This document shows positions 5,837-31,200 of a DNA stretch of 64,000 nucleotides, in pieces. A model generated the notes under the pieces. It ran no database searches, had not been told where the DNA came from, and was given only the letters and a program-made list of their open reading frames with translations. The position numbers were made by a program, and so were the translations under genes. This DNA comes from Hyphochytrium catenoides (Eukaryota > Protista > Hyphochytriomycota), in the NCBI GenBank assembly GCA_900088475.1, contig FLMG01003022.1:44989-108988 (forward strand), written 5' to 3'. Within the stretch, counting starts at the first letter, position 1. The number at the start of each line of letters is the position of its first letter.

Positions 5837-8800
5837 ATGACCACCGCTTTTGGAGTGCCCAGCTCTTATATCTGCGGGACCGTAGGTCCTTCAGACACTT
5901 CGCCTCCCGGCGCCGGGCTAGCCTTTGACAGCAAGGGAGATTACCTTGCCATCTGTACCAATGACGACGTTCGCATCTGGTCAGGTGGGAAGAACAAGAT
6001 CCCTTTGGGGCATTGTGCCACGGTCAGGTAAGAGAAGCTTACCGGCAAATAGGTGCAGTCAGGGGATCGAAGAGCTTCTGATTCTCTATCTTAGGGATGG
6101 GCCTCCTCGCCTGGCAGCGACTACCACGTTGCCCCTTAGGGTGGAAGCGCTTTGGGCAGCTAACACTGAACTTTTGCTAGTGCTGCACAGTGGAAAGGAT
6201 GTCTGCAGTCTGCACGGCTACACCGTGAAGGTGAGGAAGCTTGACGACACCCTCAGAAGCGTCTATCCTCAACTAACTGTTGGTATCCCTCTCGCCTTAC
6301 CTTGTTTGTCCTTGGTGCTGATGCCCTTGGATTCAAATAGAGGACCGAGTACACAGTCAGTCTTGATCTTCCTAGTTGGTTGGAGGCCGCTCCGGAGAGT
6401 CTTTCTGCACCGAACCTTCTCTACCAGGTGGAAGTACATCATAGTCGAAATTTCTTTCCCCAACATTCTTCTCTTTCCCTCACGGGAGGACCTACAAGTT
6501 TATGCGAGTACAAGGAGGATAAGCTTGTAGTCGGATGCCAGGATGGCTCCGTCCTGTTCATGTCCTTTGACGGGCAGGTCCTTCAGCGGATTATGTTCCA
6601 CAGCCCTCTCCCTGATACACAGCCCAGCCTAAGCTCTTCTCAGACTCTGCCAGATCCCCTCTTGCTGGAAACCAAAAGGTTTGTGGGGATGGTTTTGTCA
6701 CAGTTCAGGGGAGGACCTCTCTCTCTACCATTGCAAGGCAGCCCCTTATTGCCATTCCAACCATTGAATCTTTGCAAATGACGTAGAGGACGTTCTGCTG
6801 TTAAGAGCCTAGCCGTAGCTAGGAAGCTAACCCACTTCCCTGTCTGCCAGCTACTTATATGTGTTTGGTCTACTTCTCCTTCCCTTGCTCCGCGGACTCG
6901 TATCTCAACCCTGTTGCGCATGGGCTCACTCTTACCTTCCCCTCATCCTCCCTTTGAACAATATTATCTCCAGTTTCGATGGCGAGACGCGCAGTCACAG
7001 GAGCCGATCCCGCTCAGCATCTACTCCGATCATCACGAAAGCTTGTGTCGCATGTGCCTACTCTTCAAAATTCTCTCTCCTCTCCTCCCTCTATGAAGAC
7101 GGCAGCTGCATTATCACTAACGTGAAGAAGCTTCTCCATCAAGGCCCTCCTCGAGCTGTAACCATATGCAAGGGCTATGGAGAAGAGAGAAGTGTTACTG
7201 CGGTCTCATTCTGTGACAAGCAGGCGATCATGGCATTGGGAAGACTTAATGGCTCCGTTTCGCTTTACCTTGTAAGAAGCGAGGGAGGAGGGGACAGAGG
7301 AGGACTAGAGAGCAAAGTGGACGGAGAGGAGGACTACATGTGGTCCTTGCACCACACTATCGATCTAACGATGGCTCTCTGGGGATTTCCTGGCACCGAG
7401 CTCGGAGCTGTGAGGACAATGGCGTGGGACACAACGGAGGGGTCCCTTGCTGTCGGCTATGAGCGCCGTGGTTTAGTTGTCTGGGACTCTTCGGGATGCA
7501 GATTGATGACCACGCTGCCTCAGGTAGGATACTTGGCTCTAGTTGCTTCAATGCATTATGCCCTTCATCTCTTCAATTGGTTCAGTCAATATTCTTTTTG
7601 CCACTCTCGAGCGTCACCGAATTGTAAACCTTATTTCAAATGGCTCTCGGTTCGCCGTCTACCACCATGTCTGCTTCTTGCTCGGCCAAGCCGTTGTTCG
7701 CGACCCGCAAATGTCACTTATACCTGTCCATTGCTATTAGGCACGTCCACGCCCGCGCTATGTATCCTATCTTATACCTTCATACCTTGCAACCACCATT
7801 GCTATCTTTGAACTACTGATCAGGTGTACGGGGAGAGCACAAAAGGAGATTCGGAGCAGTTCCTCCACGGCGTCCTAGCACTGGCCTGGAACCGCAGGGA
7901 TTCATCTCTCTGTGGCATCTCTTCTCCTTTTCCGCATGAAGAGGCCCTTCGTTTATCTCTTATGAGGTTTAGAAGAGGAAGCAAATCCTCTGTTGGCACT
8001 AATGAGACTGCGATACCAACCGATCTTTTGGGACTTGCTGGCTCTGCAACGGGTACTCTCTCTTCTGGACAGTGGGACGGAGAGGGCAAGCGGTCTGAGT
8101 CTATAAGCTCTCTTCCTCCGTCTCCGGATCGCTTACCTTCCACCGCTGGTAGCCTTGATTCTTTGCAGGCTGGACGGCGAAAGGACATTGAGCGCTACCT
8201 TTCGGACTTAATGTATGAATGCACTATCATGAAGACTGACAAAGGTTTAGGACTGCACCTTCAGTCTACAGCTGAGGAGCGAGTTTGCTGGATTCACCTT
8301 GAACATCCATTCTCCCCCCTTGCTGACGGCAGTAAAGGACCAGCGGAGCTGCTTGGACTAATCCACAAGGGAGACATTCTGTGGTCAATCAACGGTAGAA
8401 AGGAAGAATACCCGTCTCAACTCCTCCCTACATAATTGCTAAGTTTCATTGCTTGATTCTCTCTCTCTCTCTATCTTGTCGAGATGTTCTAGAGACTCTG
8501 ACAACCTTAGTCAAGTGATCTGTCAGTACTCTGTACCGCCTCTTTATGTTCCCTCACCCTTTGCTATGCATCAACCGTCCATTCTAAAAGTTGCAAAATT
8601 CATGTGATACTTCGGTAGGGAAGTGTGTTCTGGGACTCAAGCTGAAGGATGTGGTGCAATTTCTGCGGCATGCTCCCAGTGGAGAACTATCCCTCCGCTT
8701 GGTCCTTGGAGACTATGACGCACTCTTTGATATCGCTCTCTTTATCGTCAGTCATCTTGGGCTAAACTAGTAAGTAAATTCTGTTGCGCTCATTCCCTAG

Positions 8801-11800
8801 TTCTGTGTGTGGAATATCTCCTTTCTGTCTCTGTTTTTGACGTCTACAGTGCGCAATCATGGTGGGTAATTATTCGGATCTGCCTTTTGGCTCTGTCTGC
8901 CATCAAGGATACTATACTTAGTCTCAGATCGGGCGCCTCCAGGACCGACCCTTCACACCTTCTTTCGCCTCCAATGCCCCGAATCACCCTATTCTTTTAT
9001 CTCTTCCCAAACTAGTGAGACCGGGATATCTACGGCAGAAAAACTCCAGCTCTACGCCTTATTCAAGCAAGCCACGTCAGGGCCTTGCCCTTTTGATGTC
9101 CCTTCGGCGGCAGAAGTAAGTTTTACCCCTATAATAATGTAGTTAGATTTTCGTTCTCTCTCCTCAGGCGATGATGGTCTTGTCAGTAGGCCTTCATCAT
9201 AAAATATCGCAGTAACAATTCGTATTCTTGAAATTAGACGTTCGTCTCTTCTCTTAAAAGGTTTGATCTGTGTGTCACACTGAGTGACTGGACTTCCCTA
9301 TCGTGCTAACTACTTGCACATCTCCTGTTTGGCCATTGTTGATAGACCTTTTCCATTCTCTTTTGCTCTTAGCCGAACAGGAAGAAATGGGCGGCGTGGA
9401 AGGCGCTTGGACAAGACCTCGATGTACACACAGCTAAATCTCGATATGTCCGCCTTTTGTTATCACTCTATGGGTCTAGTCTGCACTCGGAACTGGCAAG
9501 TGCTTCTTCGGTTGAAGTGGAGGGTTGTGAAAGTGGAGAACCAACGACAAGTCGCACTTCGGCCCCCGCAGAGGTGGAGCTCTCTCCTGGTGATAGTCTT
9601 TTCCCCCCTCCATCCCCTCAAACAGTTGAGCGTCGCATTGAAAGTCCTAGCAAGTCCTCTGCAAGTCCAAAATCGCGACCTATTGAGGTCATTGGTGGAG
9701 ACAAGAACGGAAGCGACAGGAGTGATAGGCTAGGCGGATCTCTGGCACTGACTGTATTCAATATTCTTCGGACAGATGGAAGGATGGCTTCCCCTTCTTG
9801 CTCTCCATTTGCTAAGATGGCCCTGGCGGGTCCTGACTTCCTACAGGTTCTAGACCTGGCGGAGTGGGACCCTACCGTTCTCTCCTGGGTTACGATTACT
9901 CTTCCTATGCCCTATAGTGCCGCCAACTGGCCGATTAGCCGATTCTCCTTTAGCAAAGATGGCTCAAGGATCGCTCTGGCAGGTAATGACTCGGGCGGCA
10001 AACAGAGACTGGGTCAGCTATCTTGTTTCCTGTCGCTCACGTACCGCTGCTTCCTCTCACGCTTGTTCCAAGCCTTCCCTTTATCCTCTTTCAAGGACTC
10101 TATATTAGGCAAAAGATGAGTTGGCGTCTTCGTATCCAATCTCGAAGGCGTCATACATAACTAAAGCGATATCGTCTTTGCAGGTACCACTGGTTTCGCC
10201 GTATACAATCGACTTGCTCACAAGTGGCGTCTATTTGGAAATGTGGCACAAGAGAGGGATTTAATAGTTAGTTCACTTGCGTGGCTCGGCTCCGAGTTCA
10301 TCCTCGTGTGCGCCAGGCCAGCAGGAGACAAGGTATGGAGCGATATTTTTCACCTAAGACACAAAGACCAGAAACTTCCTCCTCATCAACCAAAAGTAGC
10401 CATTATCAGCTATTTTCAGTCATTTATTCTTGAGATGATGCGATCCTGGAAATGTGTTATTTTTGCAAGGTCGCGCACAGGCTCTCTTCATTTATCACCA
10501 TTTACATGTTTATAACTCTTGCTCTCAGAGCACCGGACGTGTCACGCTGTACTTGTATCCAAGAAACCATTTAGACCAATCTTCCGTTCTCTTGGAGCAC
10601 TCACTGGAACCACCGAAGGGGGCCGAGGGGCAACATGAGAATGTTGTCATGATAATCGACAATAATGAAGATCTCCTTCTTGTCTTAATAGGCCCTACCT
10701 TATTCGCTTTCAGGCTCAAAGTGACAGGTGAGCCACCCCACTTAGGGCATCTTTCATCCTGAGTATGAGTAGCTCTAAGATCGTAAGCCTTCTAAAGCAC
10801 AATGTAGCTCTGCAGTTATGGAAGGGTTACGTTCTGACCTTGTCGTTTACGTTGTTCTTCCCTTAGGATCAGCGGAAGCGGCAGATGAGTTTCCTGCAGT
10901 AGAGTTTCGCAGCTTAGGCACGTTTACCTTCCCCCTCCCTCCTGAATCGACATCTATCAGAGAAGCATTCGTACTTCCGCGCCTTGTCAATGACTCTCCC
11001 AGTCTACAAAAGGCCTTCGAGGAAAATGCAGCTTCCACACCCTCATCTTCGTGGGGCTGGGGCTTGGGATGGCTATCCATACAGAATTCTGACCCAGAAA
11101 AACCATTCCCAAGGGTGAGGCCTCCGAGGGCAAAATACATAAATTTACAATGTGCTTATTCCTCTTCTATGCCTCACTACGGTGTTAATTTTGCCAAAAC
11201 TGTGATTACACGCCATGCGCTACGGGAAGCGCTAACTTTCGACGTCCTCGTTCGCTTAGCTGGCTCTATTGGATCACTCAGGCGCCCTTTGGCTGTCAGA
11301 CCTAGAAGCGCGGAGCTTCAGAAAGCTAGCCGATGGAGTGATAGAGATTATGCCCCTCTCTCCCGCTCAGGTGTGAGAAAAGGAATGGAGGGAATTGCCA
11401 TTATACGCCAATCATTATGTTGGTATACCTTTCCCGTCTCTTGGAGCGTTCAAGTCGTCAGAATTATCCTGGACTCTCACGTGGATAATCTAATACCTGC
11501 AACTTCACACTCTAGAATTGGCCAACTCCTCTACAACATGGATTCTGCATCTACACACGAGCGGGGATGAGGTACTGGTTTCCACAGCTAGATGGGTTGC
11601 GTTGGGTTAGAGGCCATGGGACTCGAGGTACGAATGACATTCCTGCTCTGACAAGTAGCTCTCCATCTCCTTTCCAGCCCTTATTGCTTTACGTTGACAG
11701 GCCAAAGTTTTAAAAGCTTCGCAATAACCTTCCTATCCGGCCCTTCACCTTTCCATTTAGCAGGAAATGAGTCAATTGAGGAAATTAGTGAAGAGGAGGT

Positions 11801-14800
11801 TCGTAGCGTGCTGTTGAAGCTATATGCAGTTCATAATCCAGGGAAGCTACAACAGCTACACGACGAACGAGGGTCGAAGGAAGGTGATACACTTCTGAAG
11901 TTTATTATCCGGTGGCAGGCTTCTAACATTCCCTGGCCTACTCTGAGCTTTATGCCGTGTCGTCTGTCTATTGTCCTTGCTTTATATCGGCCCTTCGGCT
12001 GGGTGGCCTCGGCACTATCACTCTAAAGCAAACCTAGTGCCGCAGTAGTATTCATTTTCCTAATCCTTTATGATCCTTATAAGTAACTGCGGCAATACTT
12101 AGAAGAACTTGCGGAAGCTAACTATCTCCTCTATGATTACCTTCCCCCATTCACCATCCTCTTTCGTCATAATGCTCATCCCCTAGGCCTTACGAAGCTC
12201 CTTGTCTCCCACTATGCGGAGCTTGGTCTCTTCGGCGAAGATGAAGTTCAGCTGTCCTCTATTTCGAGTCTCAAAGAAGCTAACCCGATGGATCTCATGG
12301 AGTCAACAGTGGACTTCAATGTAGAGGTGGGGCAAAGCTATTGTCTCGTCCTCCTCTGGGTTTGCGCTATTCGTGACGCCGTTCTTATCTATGCGCGCAA
12401 AGCACTCATGCAATCACCCGGGAGTCTTCAAACTTTCACTTTTTCCTTCCGCTGGGTCCTTTATTTCAGACTCTGTCGTCCATGTACTATTACAGGTGAA
12501 GCCATTGGGCCTCCACCCGCGGCTAGGCGTCATGATAGGAGTGTCACAAGACGTCTATTCTCCCGTCAGATCCCTACATCTGCAGCCCTCCCCATCACCT
12601 GCTCCAGTTTATGAGCTTTTGACAGAGACTCAACCTGTCTTTCAGGGCGTACTCAGAGTTCTTCTTTCTGCGGGGCGAAAAGACTGGGCCAAGGAGATAG
12701 GTAAAGGCCATGGGCCCATTCCCTGCGTCCTGCCCTTACCCTCAGAGGCTCAGAGCATGCTATTCGATTTTAATCGCTGGGCAAATGCTGCATTGTGCTC
12801 TTACACCTTTATTCTCCGTGTCCTTTAGAGAGCCACCCCTCTTCACTAGGTGTTACTGCTCTTCCATCAGCCTTTCTGTGCTTTTTATATTCGAGACTGC
12901 ATGTAATCAACGCCTCGCCTGCCACCCTTCCCTCGTGTCTCTTACGTACATTACTCTACAGCTCAAAGTATATCGTTCCTGCCATACTTCTCTGCTTGTC
13001 TGGAGCTGCTGCTTCACTCCGCACTGGAGGAGGCCTACACGATAAGAAGAGCGAGGGAGAAAGCCCAACAATCTGATCGTTCAACTCCCTCTTCTTCGTC
13101 TCCCGCCATACCACCACTATTTTCACAGAACGTGGAACCTCGAGATCCTACCGATCTCTTAGTTGATGTAAGGCTTGTGACCTTACTTGGCAATGGACTT
13201 TGCTCCTCTGCTCCGTTCTCCACTTTGCTGCCGCCACTGTAGACTAGGGCTGAGGATTGTCGTTCTTCCTTGCGCAGCAACTCATCCCTTAGCAGTTGAA
13301 GACTTTTTAGGACTTTACCTTAGCGACAGGGGCTCTCCACCAAACAGCGTTATGATTGACACCTTCCTATTTTTACCTCCAAACTGTCAGGTTCTGGACC
13401 TCTGTCGGTCGTTTCCGAGCTACCCTCACATTGTAGCTTCTACTGCTAGAAAGACAGAGGCCAACCGTTGGCCTCATTTGTTTCCACTCGCGGGCGAGCC
13501 GCGACGTCTGTTTGAGCAATGCCTTAGTATGCAGCAGCTGCAGACAGCCTCGCTCTTCCTTGTGCTCATCAGTGATGTGGAGGAGATGAGCAAAGAGAGG
13601 GTCAGTAGGACCTTCTAGTCCATCCCCAACTTTCTCTTCTAACTAACCTTGCTTGCCGGAAACTGCTTTCCCATATCTTAGCTCTGACTTTTGGGCTTTT
13701 GTCTTTGCCTTACGCGTGTCCTTCCTCATCTATCAGAGGAGTTTCCAAGGACTGTTTGGACCTGACGCCCCGGATGGCGAATGGAAGCTAGGAGCTAAAT
13801 GTGCGGAAAAGCTATTAGAAACGGCTCTGTTAAAGGTTGTGAACACCTCTACCCTGCCGATCCCCCAGCTCCTAGGGTAGCCCCTTCGATAGCTTGGATA
13901 GAGCTATCAACTTTTGTCGCGGATGCTATTTCCTCTGCTTGAACCCTTCCATGTATCTCCATCATCTCCCTTAACGCTGGCTCTATCTCTTTACGATTAT
14001 AGGCGGATTACGAGCTTGCTCGAAGCATCGTAGTCTTCTCCCATCGTTTCAGGGACACCGACGTCCGGGCTTCCTCTACCGAAGGGATGCCAGGCTCTCT
14101 TCTAGGTAATAGATAACAGTTTACAAATTATTCCCAGCGACCCGCTATCCTTCCGCTCTGGTGCTAATTTTCCTTGTTTGCATGCTTTCGTGCAGGAGAA
14201 ATTGGCTTATCAGATAGGGTTCAGGAGCTGGTAAACAGCTTTGCTGTCCGTCTGCTAGGAGCTTATAAGCTATCGGAGCTCTTGAGATTTCTGGAGACTA
14301 TGAAAGTTCCCCTCCCACCAACCTCTTCTTCACCTTCTCTCCCTGTCCCATTTGACCGCGCCTTTGCCACTAAGGCAATAGAGAGCAACTTTGGCTTTAA
14401 AGCCAGCGGTGAGGTGACACTGAAATCTGACAAGGAATACCAGCTGAAAAGGCAGAAGGCAGAGTATGTACTCTTCCTTTTCCGCGTTCTCTTATGCTTC
14501 TTGACATCAACCTTCCTTTCTGCCCTGACGAACCGAGCTCCAAAGCCAGCAGCATCCTTCCTCCCGGATACTACTAGTTCAGTCGACATTTTCATTGTCT
14601 TTTAGAGTGTTCGCCTTTGTGCCATCTCTAGGTCGCAAGGTTTCAATCGAACGGGTCCTCTTTGGCTTCAACTGTTACCAATCTCTTACAAAGTTCATCA
14701 TTGTGTAACGAATCTACGCTCTCACGCACTCATGCATCAACCCATTCTACTTTTTATGCTCGATGCAGTGCCTTGTATCGGATGCTCCAGCAGGGTGGTT

Positions 14801-14871
14801 ATACGCAGTGGGTGTCGTTCCTGCAAACAACACTGATAAAGGTTGACAAGCACAGAGCCAAAGAGGTGTAA
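5837..14871 (+). CDS. RIC1: RIC1 homolog (RIC1-RGP1 Rab6/Ypt6 GEF subunit): WD40 region plus RIC1 domain, with internal PDZ and ACB insertions
   Basis: RIC1 hallmarks PYSAANWPISRFSFSKDGSRIALAG|TTGFAVYNRLAHKWRLFGNVAQERDL and YPHIVASTARKTEANRWPHLFPLAGEPRRLFEQCLSMQQLQTASLFLVLI; N-terminus MTTAFGVP. Many GT-AG introns. The 3' end is approximate. Confidence 0.92.
8211..8710 (+). other. PDZ-like domain encoded within RIC1 (split by intron 8395-8618)
   Basis: YECTIMKTDKGLGLHL...GPAELLGLIHKGDILWSIN|GKCVLGLKLKDVVQFLRHAPSGELSLRLV has a GLGF-like loop, the GPA..G.I..GD.L..ING motif, the alphaB helix and the terminal strand. Confidence 0.85.
8711..9475 (+). other. Acyl-CoA-binding (ACB/ACBP) domain encoded within RIC1 on three exons (to 8769; 9016-9115; from 9373)
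   Basis: Spliced peptide DYDALFDIALFIVSHLGLNYETGISTAEKLQLYALFKQATSGPCPFDVPSAAEPNRKKWAAWKALGQDLDVHTAKSRYVRLLLSLYG contains the ACBP motifs KL.LYAL(Y/F)KQAT.GPC and KW.AW..L and the late Tyr. Confidence 0.9.
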
Positions 14872-15230: not shown

Positions 15231-18200
15231 TTAGAGCCCCTCCTCATCCATCTCGTCCTCAATCTCCTTGGCGATTTCTTCCTCCGTCTTCTCTCTTTCC
15301 TGCCTTTGCTCAGCAGATTCAAGCTCCTTCTTATAAGCGTCAGGTGGATATTGCATCGCCTGGAGGAAAGGATGAGAAAAGCAAAGAAGAAGATGAGGGT
15401 AAGACTCTGTGATGCATGTGTACAAGAGAGAGGGAGAGGAACGGACCTTGACAGCTTCATTGTGTACATCCAAGCAGAAGGTGATTCTCTTATGGAAGGC
15501 CTGCTGTGGCTCGGTAGTGACGTAGATATCAACAAATTCCTGAAACCAAAGATCCAGATAGCGTAACAAGCAAGAGGGTTAAGCGCTTAGTGACAGTTTG
15601 AAAATCCTTGGCAGGAAGAACGAACCTTTGACTGCATCCATCCCTCATCATGGCTGATTACGGCGTCAATAACTCCGTCCTTGATCGCCTATTGGGCGTA
15701 GTAAGAGTAAGACAATTAAATATGCGAAAGCGTTGTCAAAATCCAAGATAGTGGAAAGCAAAGAAGCAGACGCTAGAACAGCAGACTAAGGAAAGAAGGC
15801 GCTTCATCCATCATGAACGATTTTCAAGGCTCAACCGCGAAAGCTTAGATAGATGAATCCCGTGAGTAGGGATACTACCTTCGCGCAGACATACTCGGCG
15901 TTCTGGGCAGTGTCCAGGCCTAGCTTAGTGCATATATCCTGGTGAAGGCGAATACGGAGTCACCCGACGCAATATGGCAAATGGAGGTTAAAACGTGAGC
16001 CAGAGAACGGAGTGACAGAAAGTTAGAGCGCAACAAGCGGCGCAAAGAGTGCAACATTATGGTGCACGCACACCAGAGAGTTAGCGCAGTGCTCAAGCCA
16101 GATAGTAGCCAAAGGATTATCGCGCAAACCTGGAAAGATATCCTTGAGTACGAAGTGTTGATCTTCCTGAGGCCAGTTTTGATCACATTATGCCTCAGTC
16201 GCAAAATAAGAGAAAAGTTCTTGTCTTTCCTAAACTCTGCCTCGTGGCGCTGAAGAACTTGATTGAAGTCAGGGAGACTGCCAACACGTACAGCCTGGGG
16301 TCGCAGACAGTTAGGGATCAGAAAGCGGCACCCCAGAACGTCTCTTGAAGGGCTAGGCTGTGGCCAGCGCTACCCACGGTACTTTTCGAACATATGGCTG
16401 CTCTTCATACGGATAGGGGTTGTCTGCTCTGGCCAAGTCTCCTCCCTTCCTGTTCCTCGCTCACTCACTAAGAACTTAACCTCTCTAGTCGACCCAGCTT
16501 ACCTGAGTGAGTTCTTGATATGCCAATATGTGCTTCTTCAAATCTGTCTGATAGAATATTGAGCGTTCTGGGATCTCTCCCATGAGAAGCTGCACAATGA
16601 TTGCTAGCTTCTGGACCTATAGACCAGACAACGTCGATATTTAAAATCAGTGACCAAACCTCCACCGGCTACGGCGCCAAGAAGCTAGGTGGGTGGAACA
16701 AAGAGGATTATTTCAGGTAGGAGAGAGGAGAGAGAAGACACCAAGAATGGTGGGCCGAGAAGGGCAGCGGAGAAGCACGAAGTCTTCCTTACGGCAATAC
16801 GAAAGCCCAGGGCGGTGTTTTGTGGAGCCTTGCGGATGGATTGCGTGAGCTTGGTAAATGCCTCGGAGTAGTCCAGCTGAACAGCCTGAATGCGACCTAT
16901 CAGAGTGTATGAGGAAAAGGTTAGAGGCCGCCCGGCCAAATAGATGCTACCAAGAACAATATAGGGAGTCTAAAAAGCCAGACGGAAGGCAGGTGCAGAG
17001 GTCGAACCCACTACCAGAAACAAGATAGGAGAGTTAGCAGTTCTCACCAACATAGTAGAGATATCGGACAAATTGGTTGTTTGAGACAGACTCTGGAAAG
17101 TTCGTCTTAGAGAGGAGCTTGTAGGCCTGATCCACTAAATTGTACTGCAGATAGTTACGGAGCAGGAGGTTCACTAAAGTCGCCTGCCAATGAGCGGAGA
17201 AGAACAATGTGGTACGGGGCAAGAAAAGGTTAGGAAAGTCAGCTTCAATTTGAATCAATGGTGTCATTAGTCCTTCACCTGTCCGAACTCGTCATGACGC
17301 AAACAGGCCGTACGGTGGGCGCCGAGTAATAGGCTGAAATAGGAGATCGAGGAATGACGGGACGTCCAGAGAGAGCAGGTAAGTCGGGAAACTAAGCTAC
17401 TAACAGAGGAGCCCACGAACATCAAGCGAAATAAAAAGGGAGACATTGCCGAAAGTGCATAACCTTTCAGGACGACAAGAGGCAGTTGGGCACGTACGCC
17501 TAGAGGGGGTAGGCAGAAAAGCTTGACCATACCTCCTGATCTCGTGAGCTTTGCCTTGCCGCTCCATCAACAAAGAGTACAAAGAGTACGCACGCGCGGA
17601 GAATACGTCCAGGCTCCGTCTGTTTAGCGCTGTAGCACGGTTGATGAGGGAGACAGCTGCTGCAGTTGCCTAATGAGTGCAGTTAGTTAGGCGTGTGAAT
17701 GAGAAGAGATTGCGGATGAGAAGCGACAGGCGTATGAGGAAAGACAGTAGAGAAATGGCCAGGGCGCTTTACAGGGTTCAGGGAGTGCGTGGGACAAATC
17801 CATACCTGCGTGCCCGAACCAGCTCCGACCAATTTGGTCAGAATAACAAAATGTAGATAGATTTCAACCTCGGGCAAAAAGATCGTAGGCTTCTTTTCCT
17901 CTCCGTCTGTAGCTGGTGCGGGACCATCACTATCTACTTCCATTGCCTGTACAGGAGGATCCTGCAGGGCAGAGACGAAGCGCAGAAGTTCTTGCTTCTG
18001 GGGATTGCTATCTTCAACATAGAGCTCAACAGCCTTCTTCAACGTGGCCTTAGTCACGTGCTTCCGCACCCTAGTGGTAAGTCTTAGCACGCGACTGATC
18101 TTCGTGAGGTCCTTCTGGGCTGTGCTCTTTTCTAACAGAGAGATATTCTTCTTCAAATCTGCGAGGCGAGGTAAGAAAGGCAAATGTTTAGTCCTGGAGG

Positions 18201-25242: not shown

Positions 25243-28200
25243 CTAGAATTGTTCTCCATCCCTCCTGGTGGTGTGAGCCAGGACTCGTGTATCATGTGCG
25301 AACCGGTGCATCGCGACCAATCGGCGTAACTGCTCGTAGCGCGCCTCATTGAGGTAGAGTGCCTTGCCTCGCCGAAGATTCCTGTCCTCCTCTCCGTTGT
25401 TATCAAGGTATAATGAGCCCCAAACGCACCTTCTCTCGCCACCCAGAAGCAATAGAACTGTACAAGCACGAACAAGCAGAAACGCGGAATACCCTCCTCC
25501 ACATGACAGAGCATGGGCAGAGCAGGCTCCTATGCCATCCAACTTGCACGAGGAAGAGTGGCAGCAGACCAGTGTACCGCAAAGAAGGCACAGAGCAGGA
25601 TGCTCAGGAATGGCCTGGCAGAAAGCGCAAAGAGACTTCTGGCAATAGTTGATAAAGACATCAGTGTACAAATAGGGGAGCCTCATGAGAGAGAGTGAGG
25701 CGGAGGAGTAGAATGGAGGCAGAACTGCCAACACTCCTCCGCGTCCTCCTCCTCTTGAGCCCAGCTTAGCTGCACAACTCTCCATCTGAGTAAACCACGC
25801 AGGGAGAAGCGAGCGGTGGGTCTCTTGGAGGTATTGTCGAGAGAACACCTGGGTCACAGGTGGTAGACCTAAGTAGCTTGTAAGCCAGAAGACGTCCTCA
25901 AAGGCGTCCGGGGAACGGAGACAAGATCGCCCCTGTCCCGACGGATGTCCAAAGTCGTTGACGCCTAGACAGCATGCTACGTAGATAGACACTTTCTTCA
26001 GAAATGGTCGGCAAAGTTCCTCGATCGCTTTGGTGACTGGCCACAATGGTCCTCTGCCCGTCTCTCTCTCCCCTTCTCGTTGGCGGCGAAATTGGCAGGA
26101 ATACACCTCCAGCTCAAGCGGAAGCGGCAAGGGGTCATCTTTCACTCTTGTCCTTTTCACCAGCTGAAGCATACAAAGCACCGCGTCCTCTAGCGTGAAC
26201 ACCTCCTCGCAGGACAGAACTTTTTCGTCCTCTCCTTGCATACTGACTCGCTTATCCCCAGAAAAAATCGACACAAACTCCTCCTCATTAGTCCCACCCT
26301 GTACCATCACCAGGGCCACCAAAAATGCGGCCTGAAGAACCACGACGGGAAAGAGAAGTAGCAAGCAAAACTTGGCGTGGACTGCTACTCTCCATTCCTC
26401 TTCCTCCTCGTCCTTGAACCAGACTTTCCTCCTGCAAAAAGGGTCAATGTGAATATCAGAACCACTAAGATCATAGTGTGTTGGCTTCAGAAGGAGAGTG
26501 GCTCTGATAAAAGTCTGGAATAGGTCCTGAGAGAAAAGAGGAAGGCCATCGGTGGGATTTAGCAGAGCCTGATTCCCAAAAAGAACTCTCTCTTCAACCG
26601 TTCTCTCTCTCTGCCACCTGCGGTACATGTCCTGCAAGTTTTTGACGTCCACAGCAGAAGGCTCTGAACTCAAAAGATCGTGTCCTCTCTTATAGAACTC
26701 TCTCTTGAACGAAAAGACTAAAGCGGAAACTGTTCGCAGTCCCTCCACTCTGGACGGACATCCACCGCCATTAGCTAAGCTTCGAATCACTGCTCCAGGA
26801 GAAGATGACGAGACAGAAAGAGGAAGAGGAAGGGACGAAGAAGTAGCCTCGAGCTCCTTCGTTCTAAGAGAAAGCTCAACAAGAGCGACATTATCAGATA
26901 GGATCCGATCAAGCTCCCTCATGACGTCAAAATCCGTTGCAGACCCCAAAGTGTTGAGGTACTGATAATGGAAGGGGTAGTCCTTGCTGTAGCTAGCCAT
27001 AGTCAGCCGGACTGCTGCGATTGAGCGACAGCAGCCCTGAATGTATGAAGAGAGAGAGCTCACTTGTTCTTGATCAACCTCACTTTCATCTTCTCTGTCA
27101 GACCAAGCGTGGCGCAAATCATTTTGTCTCCGGGGGTCATTGAGGTGATCCACTAGCCAATGCTCAAACAACGTAGAGCGCACCTCTTGTTTGCTCTCAG
27201 TCGTACTTGCATCTACTTCTCCAGCAGCAGGGGGAGAAGACGTACTCCTACTCGAATCTACCGGCCTCGCTCTACCCCTTCGCATTCCGCTTTTCTGTGG
27301 GGGAGGAGTCAGTGGGATGAGGCAGTTTCCTAGCCTTCTGCAGATAGGACACAGAAACTCTCCCACCCTAAGGTCTACCACGCTGTCCCCTTCAAAACCC
27401 TGCCAATGTTGCTGTCTGTCAATGAGTGTTTCATAATATGCCTTGAAGCAATCAACGTGAATCCGGTGGCCACAGCATTGGATATGGACACTCATATTGT
27501 GAAGTATGGCGGCCTCCTCAGGAATGTTATTCAGCACATTGGGTACATCGGCAGGATCCAGTCTCATTTCTTCCATTCCATACCGCAGTCGCAGCCATGT
27601 ATTGTACGCAGATGATTGCGTAGAGTCCAGCTCGTCTATAGTCCAGCTTTTATTACCCTCTCTGCGTTTGCCTGCCCACGCCTGGCGCTGGCTGGAGGTG
27701 CACAACGAAGTAGAGCTGACGAAAGAGACGAGCCCAAAGACCCCGGCCTGATCACCTCCTGATGATGAAGAGGAAGAAGACCTCGATGTAAAGAAAGTCG
27801 ATCCCTTGCACAAGGCACACTCGACTGCCTGCTCTTCGCCTGCACTTTGGATGGCAATAGCCTCGGCAGGTCTGTCCTCCTGGACGACTTCACTGGCAGC
27901 TGGCAGGGCCTGAGGTCCTAACGAAACGTCCTCTCTATCGGTCTCATCGTCACTTGTCATCTGATCTGCTTCTTCGGTCGCTTTAAAGAGAAAGGAGGCA
28001 GCGTCTTGCTGTTTCTTCATCCTCTCTAGGATCAGGGCTTGACGGGCTTTAGCTTCAAGAAGGCGCTGCTTTCTCTTGTCATCCTCATCTCGTGCTCCTT
28101 CGCTTTTGAGAGCTCCATCGCAGGATAACGCTTTCTCACTCTGCGAGATATCCCTAGCATCAAATGCAGAGGTATCTCGCTCTCGTTTCCTGCTAGACGA

Positions 28201-31200
28201 AGGAAGCAAAGGAAGAAGCAGAAGTTCTCGCCTTTCAAGGAGGTCACGGCATTTGTCATCTTTCTTCCGGAGGGTCGTCAACAACTCGAAAATCAGAGGG
28301 CGTTGGTCGCTCAGGTCGTCTCTGCCCTCAAAGTAAAGCAGAAGAGAGAGTATGCTTGCACCATTGACATCTCTTATCCCCTCTCTTGTTGAAGGAGAGA
28401 CGCTACCATACTGGGGCCGTAAAGGGGGAGACAATGTTCCAGGAACCTGAGAGAGAAGAAATGAGCATGAAACTTCAGTCGAAGTGTTCCACATTACTGA
28501 CCCAGAGCAAAGCACAAGTAAAGGACGCCAGAGGGGGCGCGTCTTATTTCTGGCTATCAATAGGGGTTAGGTCTTACCTCAAAAGAGGCGCATTCGAAAG
28601 GATCATCGGAGGGCATAGACATGGAGCTATCCTCCTTTCTGGATGTGTCATGATTGGCACCAATAGATCTACGGGGTAGCTGCGTATTGAGGCGGAATGA
28701 GTGCGGAAGAGACGCATCAGAAACGATTATGAATCAGGCCAACACCATCGACCATGCCGGTGTAACAGAACTACTGACAAAAGCAACGAGCATGTTAGGA
28801 CAGACAAAAAGGAATGTTTATACACAAGATAGAAGAAAGCTGAATCCTGACGCAAAAAGACAGGATCTAAATCTGAAAGAGAAAAGGGAAAGGTCCGCTC
28901 AGACCTTAATGGCTAGGGCGAAAGTGTATAATGCCAAGTTCAGCAGGCTCTCGGAGGAGGGCCCTCGAGTTGCGGTACGATAGAGAAGGGAGAAGACAGT
29001 GCTGTGCAGCTGGGCACAGTAGAGGAGCCGGTAAGGTAGGTCGCCGAATACAGGATACGAGGGCAGAAGAGTCGGTGGAGGTGGGAAGGGGAGAGGGTCA
29101 TGCTTTGGTTGTTGCCGTGAAGGAGAATCATTGCTGGAACTCCTCTGAGACATTTCTTTTCCTGCTGGCGAGCTGACGTATAGTCTATAGTTCTCTTCCA
29201 GTTTCTGCAAGTCGTGTCGGCAATAGTGTGTGAAGAAGGGGTCGATCTCACCCCACGACTCGGACTTTAGAGTAAAGTATCCGTTTCCCATGTCAGTCTC
29301 TCGAGGAGAGTGAAAGTCACCCACCTCCCGCAGATAGCTGTCGAATTCCTGGCTGTCCGATAGAGAGAGAGCAATCTTTCCTGTTAGCTGACTGGCTGTC
29401 ATGTTTCCCGTCGCCAGCCAGTGAATAATCTCTCTCCGGATTCTTTGTTTCTTGCTGAGCCCAATACGGGACCTATCACACACAACTTGTAAATAAAGAC
29501 GTAGCATTTCTTCAACTGGAGAGAGGCTCGGGTCAGCAGATAGGCCGAGTGGAGCAGGACCAAAGATATCGTCGGTCCCTGTGACGAGGGTAGAGGAGCG
29601 GGAGACGGAGAGAATATCTGTGGCCTCAAATCGCTCAATCATGGCCTTTAGCAACTCCTTTCCTCCTATGAGCATCCCACAAGTCTGTAGCAACATGATG
29701 TCTAGGTCCATCCCGGTATCGTGCCAATACTTGGACTGGTAGTAAGAGACCTAAGCGCAGACGAGAAAATTAGAATGATTTGCCCAGTGGTGATGCCTGC
29801 CCTGGCTCCCACGTCATCAGATTCTTTATGATCTTAGGTCTTTGTCCTCTTTCTTCTATCCTGGCTCCATCGCAACAGGCAGTCGTCTACAACGTCTGCC
29901 ATCATTTCTCTGTTCCTCGTTGTTTGTGCACATGCACACTTACCTGGTGATGAGCCACTTGTCCATTTCTAGCCCACAGTCCATTCACTATCTGACTTCT
30001 CAACACAAGGACTCGCAAGGGATGTTCCAATAACAAGAGTGGGAAAGACGGAGAAAGCTCGTCTAGTACCAGCAACTCCTCGATAGAAAGGGTCTGATAC
30101 TCATTCACCATTGCTGTCTCAACTTTCTGGAAGGTCTCCAAAATTTCACTGATTGCACATGCAAGAAGCCGATGCAGTGGTATGTGGAAGCTTACAGGTT
30201 GCGATGACACCTGACCATGAAGAGGATCCCAGAAGATCAGTACTTTGTGCCAACATCTATGGGTTTTATCGCCAGAAGCAAGCGGAGGATAGGTGGGAAG
30301 CAACGAGCACTCTAGGTGAAGGAATGGACGTATGGAGAGACCTTAGGCGAAAAGCAAAGTAAAATAACGAAGAAGAAAGCTACCAGGACCCAATGGTTAC
30401 CTGAAAGTGGACTTCTTCTCTCTCCTCCTCCCCTTCACCCTCCTGCCAGATATCCCCTAGCAGCAATGTGCCACTGATGCTTCTCAACCACTTCGAAAGA
30501 CTGGACTTGATGGGCCTCAGAACGGCTCTTGCAACCTCCAGGGGTTTGAGACCACGGAGGATAGGCAGATGACGCTCACTAATGGCAGGGAACAGAGCGC
30601 CTCCGAGTCGAGCGCGGCTAGCCTCCTCATTCTGGTCCCCCGGCACGGACCCTGGACACGCGCCAGCGGCGCATTCTATAAGTCGTTTCATGCCGGTAAC
30701 TAGGGTCTGCAAGAGCAGCATGACCTCGTGGTCCAAGATAAAAGCTGCCTGCCATGTCTTGCTCTCGTATTCGACGTGCTGGTACAGCGCCCTCTCTTGT
30801 AGATCCATATTCTGAACAAGGGAGACGAGCGATAGAGCTGTCTCTAGGAAAGAGGATGGGATCACGCCGGCGTACAGGCCTGTCCGGTGAAGGGCTTATT
30901 AGAGAATAGATGCTACGGACGAAGGATATGACAGAAGCCTTTGATTGGGTGAAGCTCGTGTTGAGCCAATAGACCAAGGGACAAAGCGCGCGCCCTTGGC
31001 GGACCGAGGAAAGAAAGAAGACCCTGTCCAAAAGTAGCCATGAGTCCAACACAAAAGGGAAACGGTGGATTCCATCAAATGCTGTTGGTAGGTAGAAGTA
31101 GGGAAAGAATATCATTTGAACCTGCTTTCCTAGTTTGTTCTTCATGTCCTATCACGAGTGAGCTCCACAAACTGTGGCTTGCCACCAAATCATGCTCAAG

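Follow-up and report, generated by a model that had tools for sequence, protein, structure and literature searches.

Yeast Ric1 and human RIC1 (KIAA1432) are the closest described counterparts of the gene reported here. Ric1 consists of two β-propellers arranged in a clamshell and a solenoid that performs exchange, and disordered loops project off its presumed membrane-facing surface (PMC11618376). An amphipathic helix in its partner Rgp1 aids Golgi binding, and Golgi specificity is inferred to involve one more partner, specific recruitment of Ric1–Rgp1 to Golgi membranes being stated as unresolved (PMC11618376). A second point of comparison is the Golgi protein ACBD3 (GCP60), whose acyl-CoA-binding (ACB) domain binds palmitoyl-CoA, and which complexes with the PDZ protein GRASP55, with Golgin45 and with TBC1D22, which acts on Rab33b as a GTPase-activating protein (GAP); Rab33b in turn lies upstream of Rab6 via Ric1–Rgp1 (PMC6514682). 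Here we describe a RIC1 gene of Hyphochytrium catenoides (Hyphochytriomycota; assembly GCA_900088475.1, contig FLMG01003022.1, positions 44,989–108,988) that very probably encodes a PDZ and an ACB domain within the RIC1 chain. Positions below are those of this 64,000-nt window, the whole stretch of DNA analyzed, and features lie on the forward strand unless stated.

The RIC1 gene and its insert

On its domain matches, the host gene is an orthologue of RIC1, the large subunit of the Ric1–Rgp1 guanine nucleotide exchange factor (GEF) for Rab6, in an intron-rich eukaryote. It spans approximately 5837–14871, from an ATG at 5837 to a TAA at 14869–14871, as judged from open reading frame (ORF) tracks, a crude dynamic-programming (DP) gene model and Pfam RIC1 matches. 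The gene stretch has a GC content of 49% and many short exons; hand curation was restricted to 6974–10332, and the gene model, which placed several exons wrongly (one of them an 11-nt micro-exon), played no part in defining the exons that carry the insert. At the 3′ end, two exons of the C-terminal α-solenoid match PF07064 collinearly: 12964–13167 at profile positions 23–55 (22.3 bits), and 13391–13600 at 71.4 bits (cut-off 27). PF25440 matches consecutive exons just 3′ of the insert, at profile positions 22–58 (27.2 bits, at the end of the last insert-bearing exon) and 61–104 (48.5 bits, in the second-propeller exon 10184–10332, which joins in phase), the whole-domain cut-off of this family being 150 bits. 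On the 5′ side, exon 6974–7523 gives generic WD40/β-propeller Pfam matches, as expected of the first propeller, and is in phase with the exon that begins at 7824. In the ESM Atlas, the solenoid exon has RIC1 clusters as its look-alikes (0.91–0.94), and the RIC1 exons gave no detectable RIC1 match in the PDB. The initial annotation had called the host exons RIC1, an identity borne out by the 71.4-bit PF07064 match, with the partial PF25440 matches beginning shortly past the insert. Neither Rgp1 nor Rab6 is encoded in the 64-kb window.

Between the RIC1 strands at 7860–7892 and 9742–9768 lie roughly 374 additional residues: a linker of 107 residues, a PDZ domain of 91, an ACB domain of 87 and a second linker of 89. 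Four exons carry this cassette. Exon 1 (7824–8394) contains the RIC1 blade strand, the Ser-rich linker 1 (7893–8213) and the N-terminal half of the PDZ domain with its GLGL loop (8214–8394). Intron 1 (8395–8618, 224 nt, GTAGAA...TAG) lies inside the PDZ domain, which is completed at the start of exon 2 (8619–8769); there the last PDZ strand runs up to 8710 and ACB helix 1 (8711–8769) follows at once, with no spacer between the domains. After intron 2 (8770–9015, 246 nt, GTAAGT...TAG), exon 3 (9016–9115) encodes the ACB core in 33 residues, including helix 2 with LYALFKQAT. Intron 3 (9116–9372, 257 nt, GTAAGT...TAG) precedes exon 4 (9373–9982), which encodes ACB helices 3–4 (9373–9474), the Ser/Pro/Glu-rich linker 2 (9475–9741) and the resumed RIC1 sequence (9742–9982) with the start of the second propeller, and is followed by a donor GT at 9983. 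The splice sites originally proposed, AACG/gtagaa...tag/GG, AACTA/gtaagt...tag/T and GCAGAA/gtaagt...tag/CCG, are present in the sequence and join the four exons in phase.

Reading-frame evidence ties the cassette to its host. Joined through their GT..AG introns, the four exons form 477 codons with no stop, and stops occur in all three frames of every cassette intron. A codon log-odds score trained on long ORFs from the rest of the window is positive solely in the proposed frame of each exon; in the introns, every frame scores negative. In one open frame, exon 1 runs from the RIC1 blade through linker 1 into the start of the PDZ domain, and exon 4 from the end of the ACB domain through linker 2 into the RIC1 propeller. 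No stop interrupts the 107 codons of linker 1 or the 89 of linker 2 (chance P about 0.006 and 0.014, respectively), and such long open linkers, together with the return of both domains to register across the introns, exclude chance. The exons measure 571, 151, 100 and 610 nt, so skipping any one of them, the middle two or all four shifts the frame. Because whole-exon skipping breaks the frame, and because RIC1 and cassette sequence share exons 1 and 4, the cassette belongs to the RIC1 chain. We conclude with high confidence that, at the DNA level, RIC1, PDZ and ACB sequences are parts of a single predicted chain.

The insertion point was located by Pfam profile coordinates only. Counting back from PF25440 profile position 22, the second propeller starts about 45 residues past the resumption of RIC1 at 9742, which puts the insert within the final blade of the first propeller. 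On this sequence evidence the insert is built into a surface loop of that blade, as a predicted part of the translated RIC1 chain. As in yeast Ric1 and human RIC1, two predicted β-propellers are followed by a C-terminal α-solenoid, with the partial PF25440 matches and PF07064 in the right order (the plan is that of PMC11618376); unlike either, the Hyphochytrium gene carries the 374-residue PDZ–ACB insert in its first propeller.

Another exon of the RIC1 gene, 11763–11918, is stop-free, separates the second propeller from the solenoid, and encodes the motif LYAVHNPGKL...LLKFIIR. It has no Pfam or PDB match, and may be a second lineage-specific insertion in this gene.

The PDZ and acyl-CoA-binding domains

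Single PDZ-bearing exons scored nothing in the first Pfam scan, because intron 1 splits the domain. Across the exon 1/2 junction, a piece of 51 residues reaches 33 bits with PF17820 (cut-off 27) and 27.6 bits with PF00595 (cut-off 23.2; profile positions 36–79 of 81), and the N-terminal half alone matches PF00595 at profile positions 8–53 (14.3 bits), collinear with the junction piece. This match across the junction also validates the weak GTAGAA donor of intron 1. The carboxylate-binding loop, read from the sequence as K-x3-GLGL (K-TDK-GLGL), lies at 8244–8255 before the second strand, and has the pattern Lys/Arg-x3-Gly-hydrophobic-Gly-hydrophobic. Searched separately in the ESM Atlas, the two halves have PDZ families as all of their top look-alikes, which serve as leads only; searched with phmmer against the PDB, they gave nothing meaningful. 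The domain is a canonical PDZ, and the PDZs of GRASP proteins belong to a different Pfam family.

Exon 3 alone matches the ACB family PF00887 at 31.6 bits (cut-off 28.3; profile positions 18–43), and the match carries on collinearly into the opening 29 residues of exon 4, at profile positions 50–76 (15.3 bits). PDB sequence matches are ACB domains in 11 of 11 cases for exon 3 and in 7 of 8 for the start of exon 4. Both exons match best to adjacent parts (residues 38–60 and 66–96) of one chain, 2cqu, which is the ACB domain from human peroxisomal enoyl-CoA isomerase (ECI2/PECI). In bovine ACBP, acyl-CoA is contacted by Tyr28, Tyr31, Lys32, Gln33, Lys54 and Tyr73. The 2cqu alignments retain the contact residues in LY, KQAT, KW and a late Tyr (in S-R-Y-V), as the initial annotation had read them, along with its Tyr-to-Phe change before KQAT; with these contacts kept, the domain may bind long-chain acyl-CoA. 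It also shares LYAL-KQAT-GPC and KW-AW-ALG with 2cqu. ACB domains of ECI2/PECI and of the ACBD4/5 type likewise have GPC after KQAT; in those proteins the ACB domain sits at the N-terminus of an enzyme or a tail-anchored tether, whereas here it lies inside a propeller loop. Pfam scores above cut-off, across the exon 1/2 junction for the PDZ domain and on exon 3 alone for the ACB domain, uphold both of the original domain calls.

Variation in genomic sequence fits the exon–intron model of the cassette. Three DNA runs from two samples of the same organism hold the locus, and their contigs bridge the introns without joints, with pieces covering, for example, 6063–8775 and 8835–10082; the runs are therefore genomic, and confirm the cassette arrangement. 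The variant counts that follow are among the differences listed, beyond which there are 30 further differences. Within 7824–9982, all six insertions or deletions (indels) fall in introns (binomial P = 0.0015), and single-nucleotide polymorphisms (SNPs) number 14 in 727 intron bases versus 7 in 1432 exon bases, a density four times lower in exons (Fisher P = 0.002). Two of these indels (8458 and 8601) and six of the SNPs are in intron 1; three indels (8821, 8834 and 8999) and another six SNPs are in intron 2; and the remaining indel (9187) and two SNPs (9329 and 9357) are in intron 3. The sole SNPs in domain-coding sequence are two in the ACB part of exon 3, both third-position and synonymous. 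Linker 2 has one SNP, also third-position synonymous, and linker 1 has four, all residue-changing. Neither haplotype carries a frameshift, a stop or a residue-changing variant in the domains. The architecture first proposed, a PDZ domain running directly into an ACB domain within RIC1 and flanked on both sides by Ser/Pro-rich linkers, is supported by profile hidden Markov models (HMMs), by frame logic and by these variant patterns.

More widely, region 6000–11900 shows many SNPs and small indels relative to the DNA runs, at about 1.9% in the cassette-region introns. At places within it, one run contains two variant contigs of similar depth, which suggests heterozygosity or mixed strains.

Alternative explanations and distribution

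Several observations weigh against a translated and functional insert, and they bear on different alternatives. No RNA runs were listed for 7600–10400, so the exon joints are read from DNA. The cassette could then be optional, with the main RIC1 mRNA removing both domains and the PDZ–ACB form being minor or conditional. A cryptic donor, GT 8213 (GTATGA), and a cryptic acceptor, AG 9479 (..GGGTCTAG), lie in frame with one another at the outer edges of the two domains, and joining them would excise PDZ and ACB and fuse the two linkers in frame. This donor is the only one in linker 1 with a score like that of a real intron (4/6), and the acceptor has a pyrimidine tract of 0.64. A cassette-less isoform is possible, as the pair is in frame and no worse than real sites of the gene; the sites are, however, no better than average, about a third of GT/AG pairs would be in frame by chance, and whole-exon skipping breaks the frame. 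We judge an optional cassette unlikely, and even if it were optional, the restriction of domain-coding variants to synonymous changes indicates that the domains are kept in use. It is very improbable that the PDZ and ACB exons are a gene-model or assembly artefact, either a separate nested gene or part of a chimeric contig. An ATG at 8211, just before the PDZ domain, would favor a nested gene, but no stop codon intervenes between the RIC1 blade and the PDZ domain or between the ACB domain and the next RIC1 blade, both linkers are open throughout, and contigs from the three runs of both samples traverse the locus without joints.

A different concern is that the insert is a tolerated product of domain shuffling, its ACB domain having lost acyl-CoA binding, with little or no effect on Rab6 activation. 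The Phe that replaces Tyr before KQAT (the Tyr31 position) points in this direction, although the residue is still aromatic, as does the failure of searches to return relatives that could show conservation. Exon 1 found 0 matches by phmmer against 1.84 billion protein representatives, exon 4 and the upstream RIC1 exon found 0 in a word-indexed protein search, and two scans of metagenomes, one using exon 4 and one the RIC1 solenoid exon, turned up no relative. Against such decay, both domains exceed their Pfam cut-offs, the Tyr, Lys-Gln, Lys-Trp and late Tyr contacts of ACBP are kept, and the two haplotypes are intact, with no residue-changing domain variant among those listed. We assign this alternative the same low probability as an optional cassette. 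Overall, the explanation that we favor, with moderate confidence, is a RIC1 protein with a translated PDZ–ACB insert acting as a tethered module.

The same searches bear on how unusual the architecture is. The initial annotation held that other RIC1 proteins have neither domain; the RIC1 clusters that the ESM Atlas lists, which carry RIC1 families only, and the literature, where a search for RIC1 with ACBP and/or PDZ found no paper describing such a protein, both agree, on a point that they probe weakly. The searches are compatible with, and no proof of, novelty of the RIC1–PDZ–ACB combination. As far as they reach, a PDZ domain running straight into an ACB domain is an undescribed two-domain unit.

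Elsewhere in the window, a multi-exon gene on the reverse strand (15231–18183), convergent with the 3′ end of RIC1, encodes the proteasome lid subunit Rpn3/PSMD3, an assignment made by eye from ORF translations on the basis of a PCI-domain motif and an acidic tail. Also on the reverse strand is a single-exon ORF of 1105 codons (25243–28560) for a UBR-type E3 ligase, whose matches carry the Pfam families PF02207, PF18995 and PF22960. Its nearest database relatives, including one from a chytrid, share about 40% identity across about 16% of the query, which indicates sparse sampling of the lineage. Scanning the window for Rfam families and tRNAs gave no matches.

A possible role in Golgi recruitment

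How the insert might work can be outlined from its position and its domains. The PDZ–ACB pair would hang from the propeller on two flexible tethers, leaving the exchange site in the C-terminal α-solenoid unchanged, and would act in recruitment or regulation instead of catalysis. The PDZ domain would grip a C-terminal tail, that of a golgin or of a membrane protein from the Golgi or endosomes. The ACB domain, for its part, would have long-chain acyl-CoA as its ligand, or would serve as a membrane or protein contact as in ACBD3. We put this mechanism forward tentatively, as a possibility suggested by the sequence. The initial annotation had proposed that acyl-CoA could gate or localize the Rab6 activator, with the PDZ domain capturing cargo or scaffold C-termini. 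These ideas are conjectural; gating of Rab6 exchange by acyl-CoA is possible but speculative, and we consider recruitment or regulation by a tethered module the likelier reading. It is doubtful, and less probable than either an optional or a merely tolerated cassette, that the two domains form a single sensor, which would couple Rab6 activation to local acyl-CoA supply or would recognize a lipidated C-terminal tail (that of a palmitoylated cargo or a prenylated Rab). If that were true, the fusion would be a Rosetta stone, indicating a general and as yet unseen functional tie of Ric1–Rgp1 to Golgi ACB and PDZ proteins, namely the ACBD3–GRASP55–TBC1D22 complex upstream of Rab6.

Known proteins offer partial parallels. 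In PDZ-RhoGEF/LARG, RAPGEF2/6 and Tiam1, a PDZ domain places a GEF beside the C-terminus of a membrane protein; these factors act on Rho or Rap GTPases, through DH-PH or CDC25 catalytic domains, and we know of no PDZ domain in a Rab6 GEF. ACBD3 resembles the Hyphochytrium protein in carrying an ACB domain on a Golgi trafficking regulator. It differs in consisting of ACB, Q and GOLD domains, with no PDZ, propeller or GEF domain, whereas the Hyphochytrium protein has its ACB domain in cis with the GEF; the parallel with ACBD3 drawn in the initial annotation is fair as an analogy, and an analogy only.

The finding is confined to one poorly sampled lineage. Within it, a RIC1 that has its own peptide-binding and acyl-CoA-binding types of domain suggests that the exchange factor may be recruited to the Golgi by the tail of a membrane protein together with an input from a lipid metabolite. 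For model organisms, it suggests Golgi ACB and PDZ proteins as candidate classes of partner for Ric1–Rgp1.

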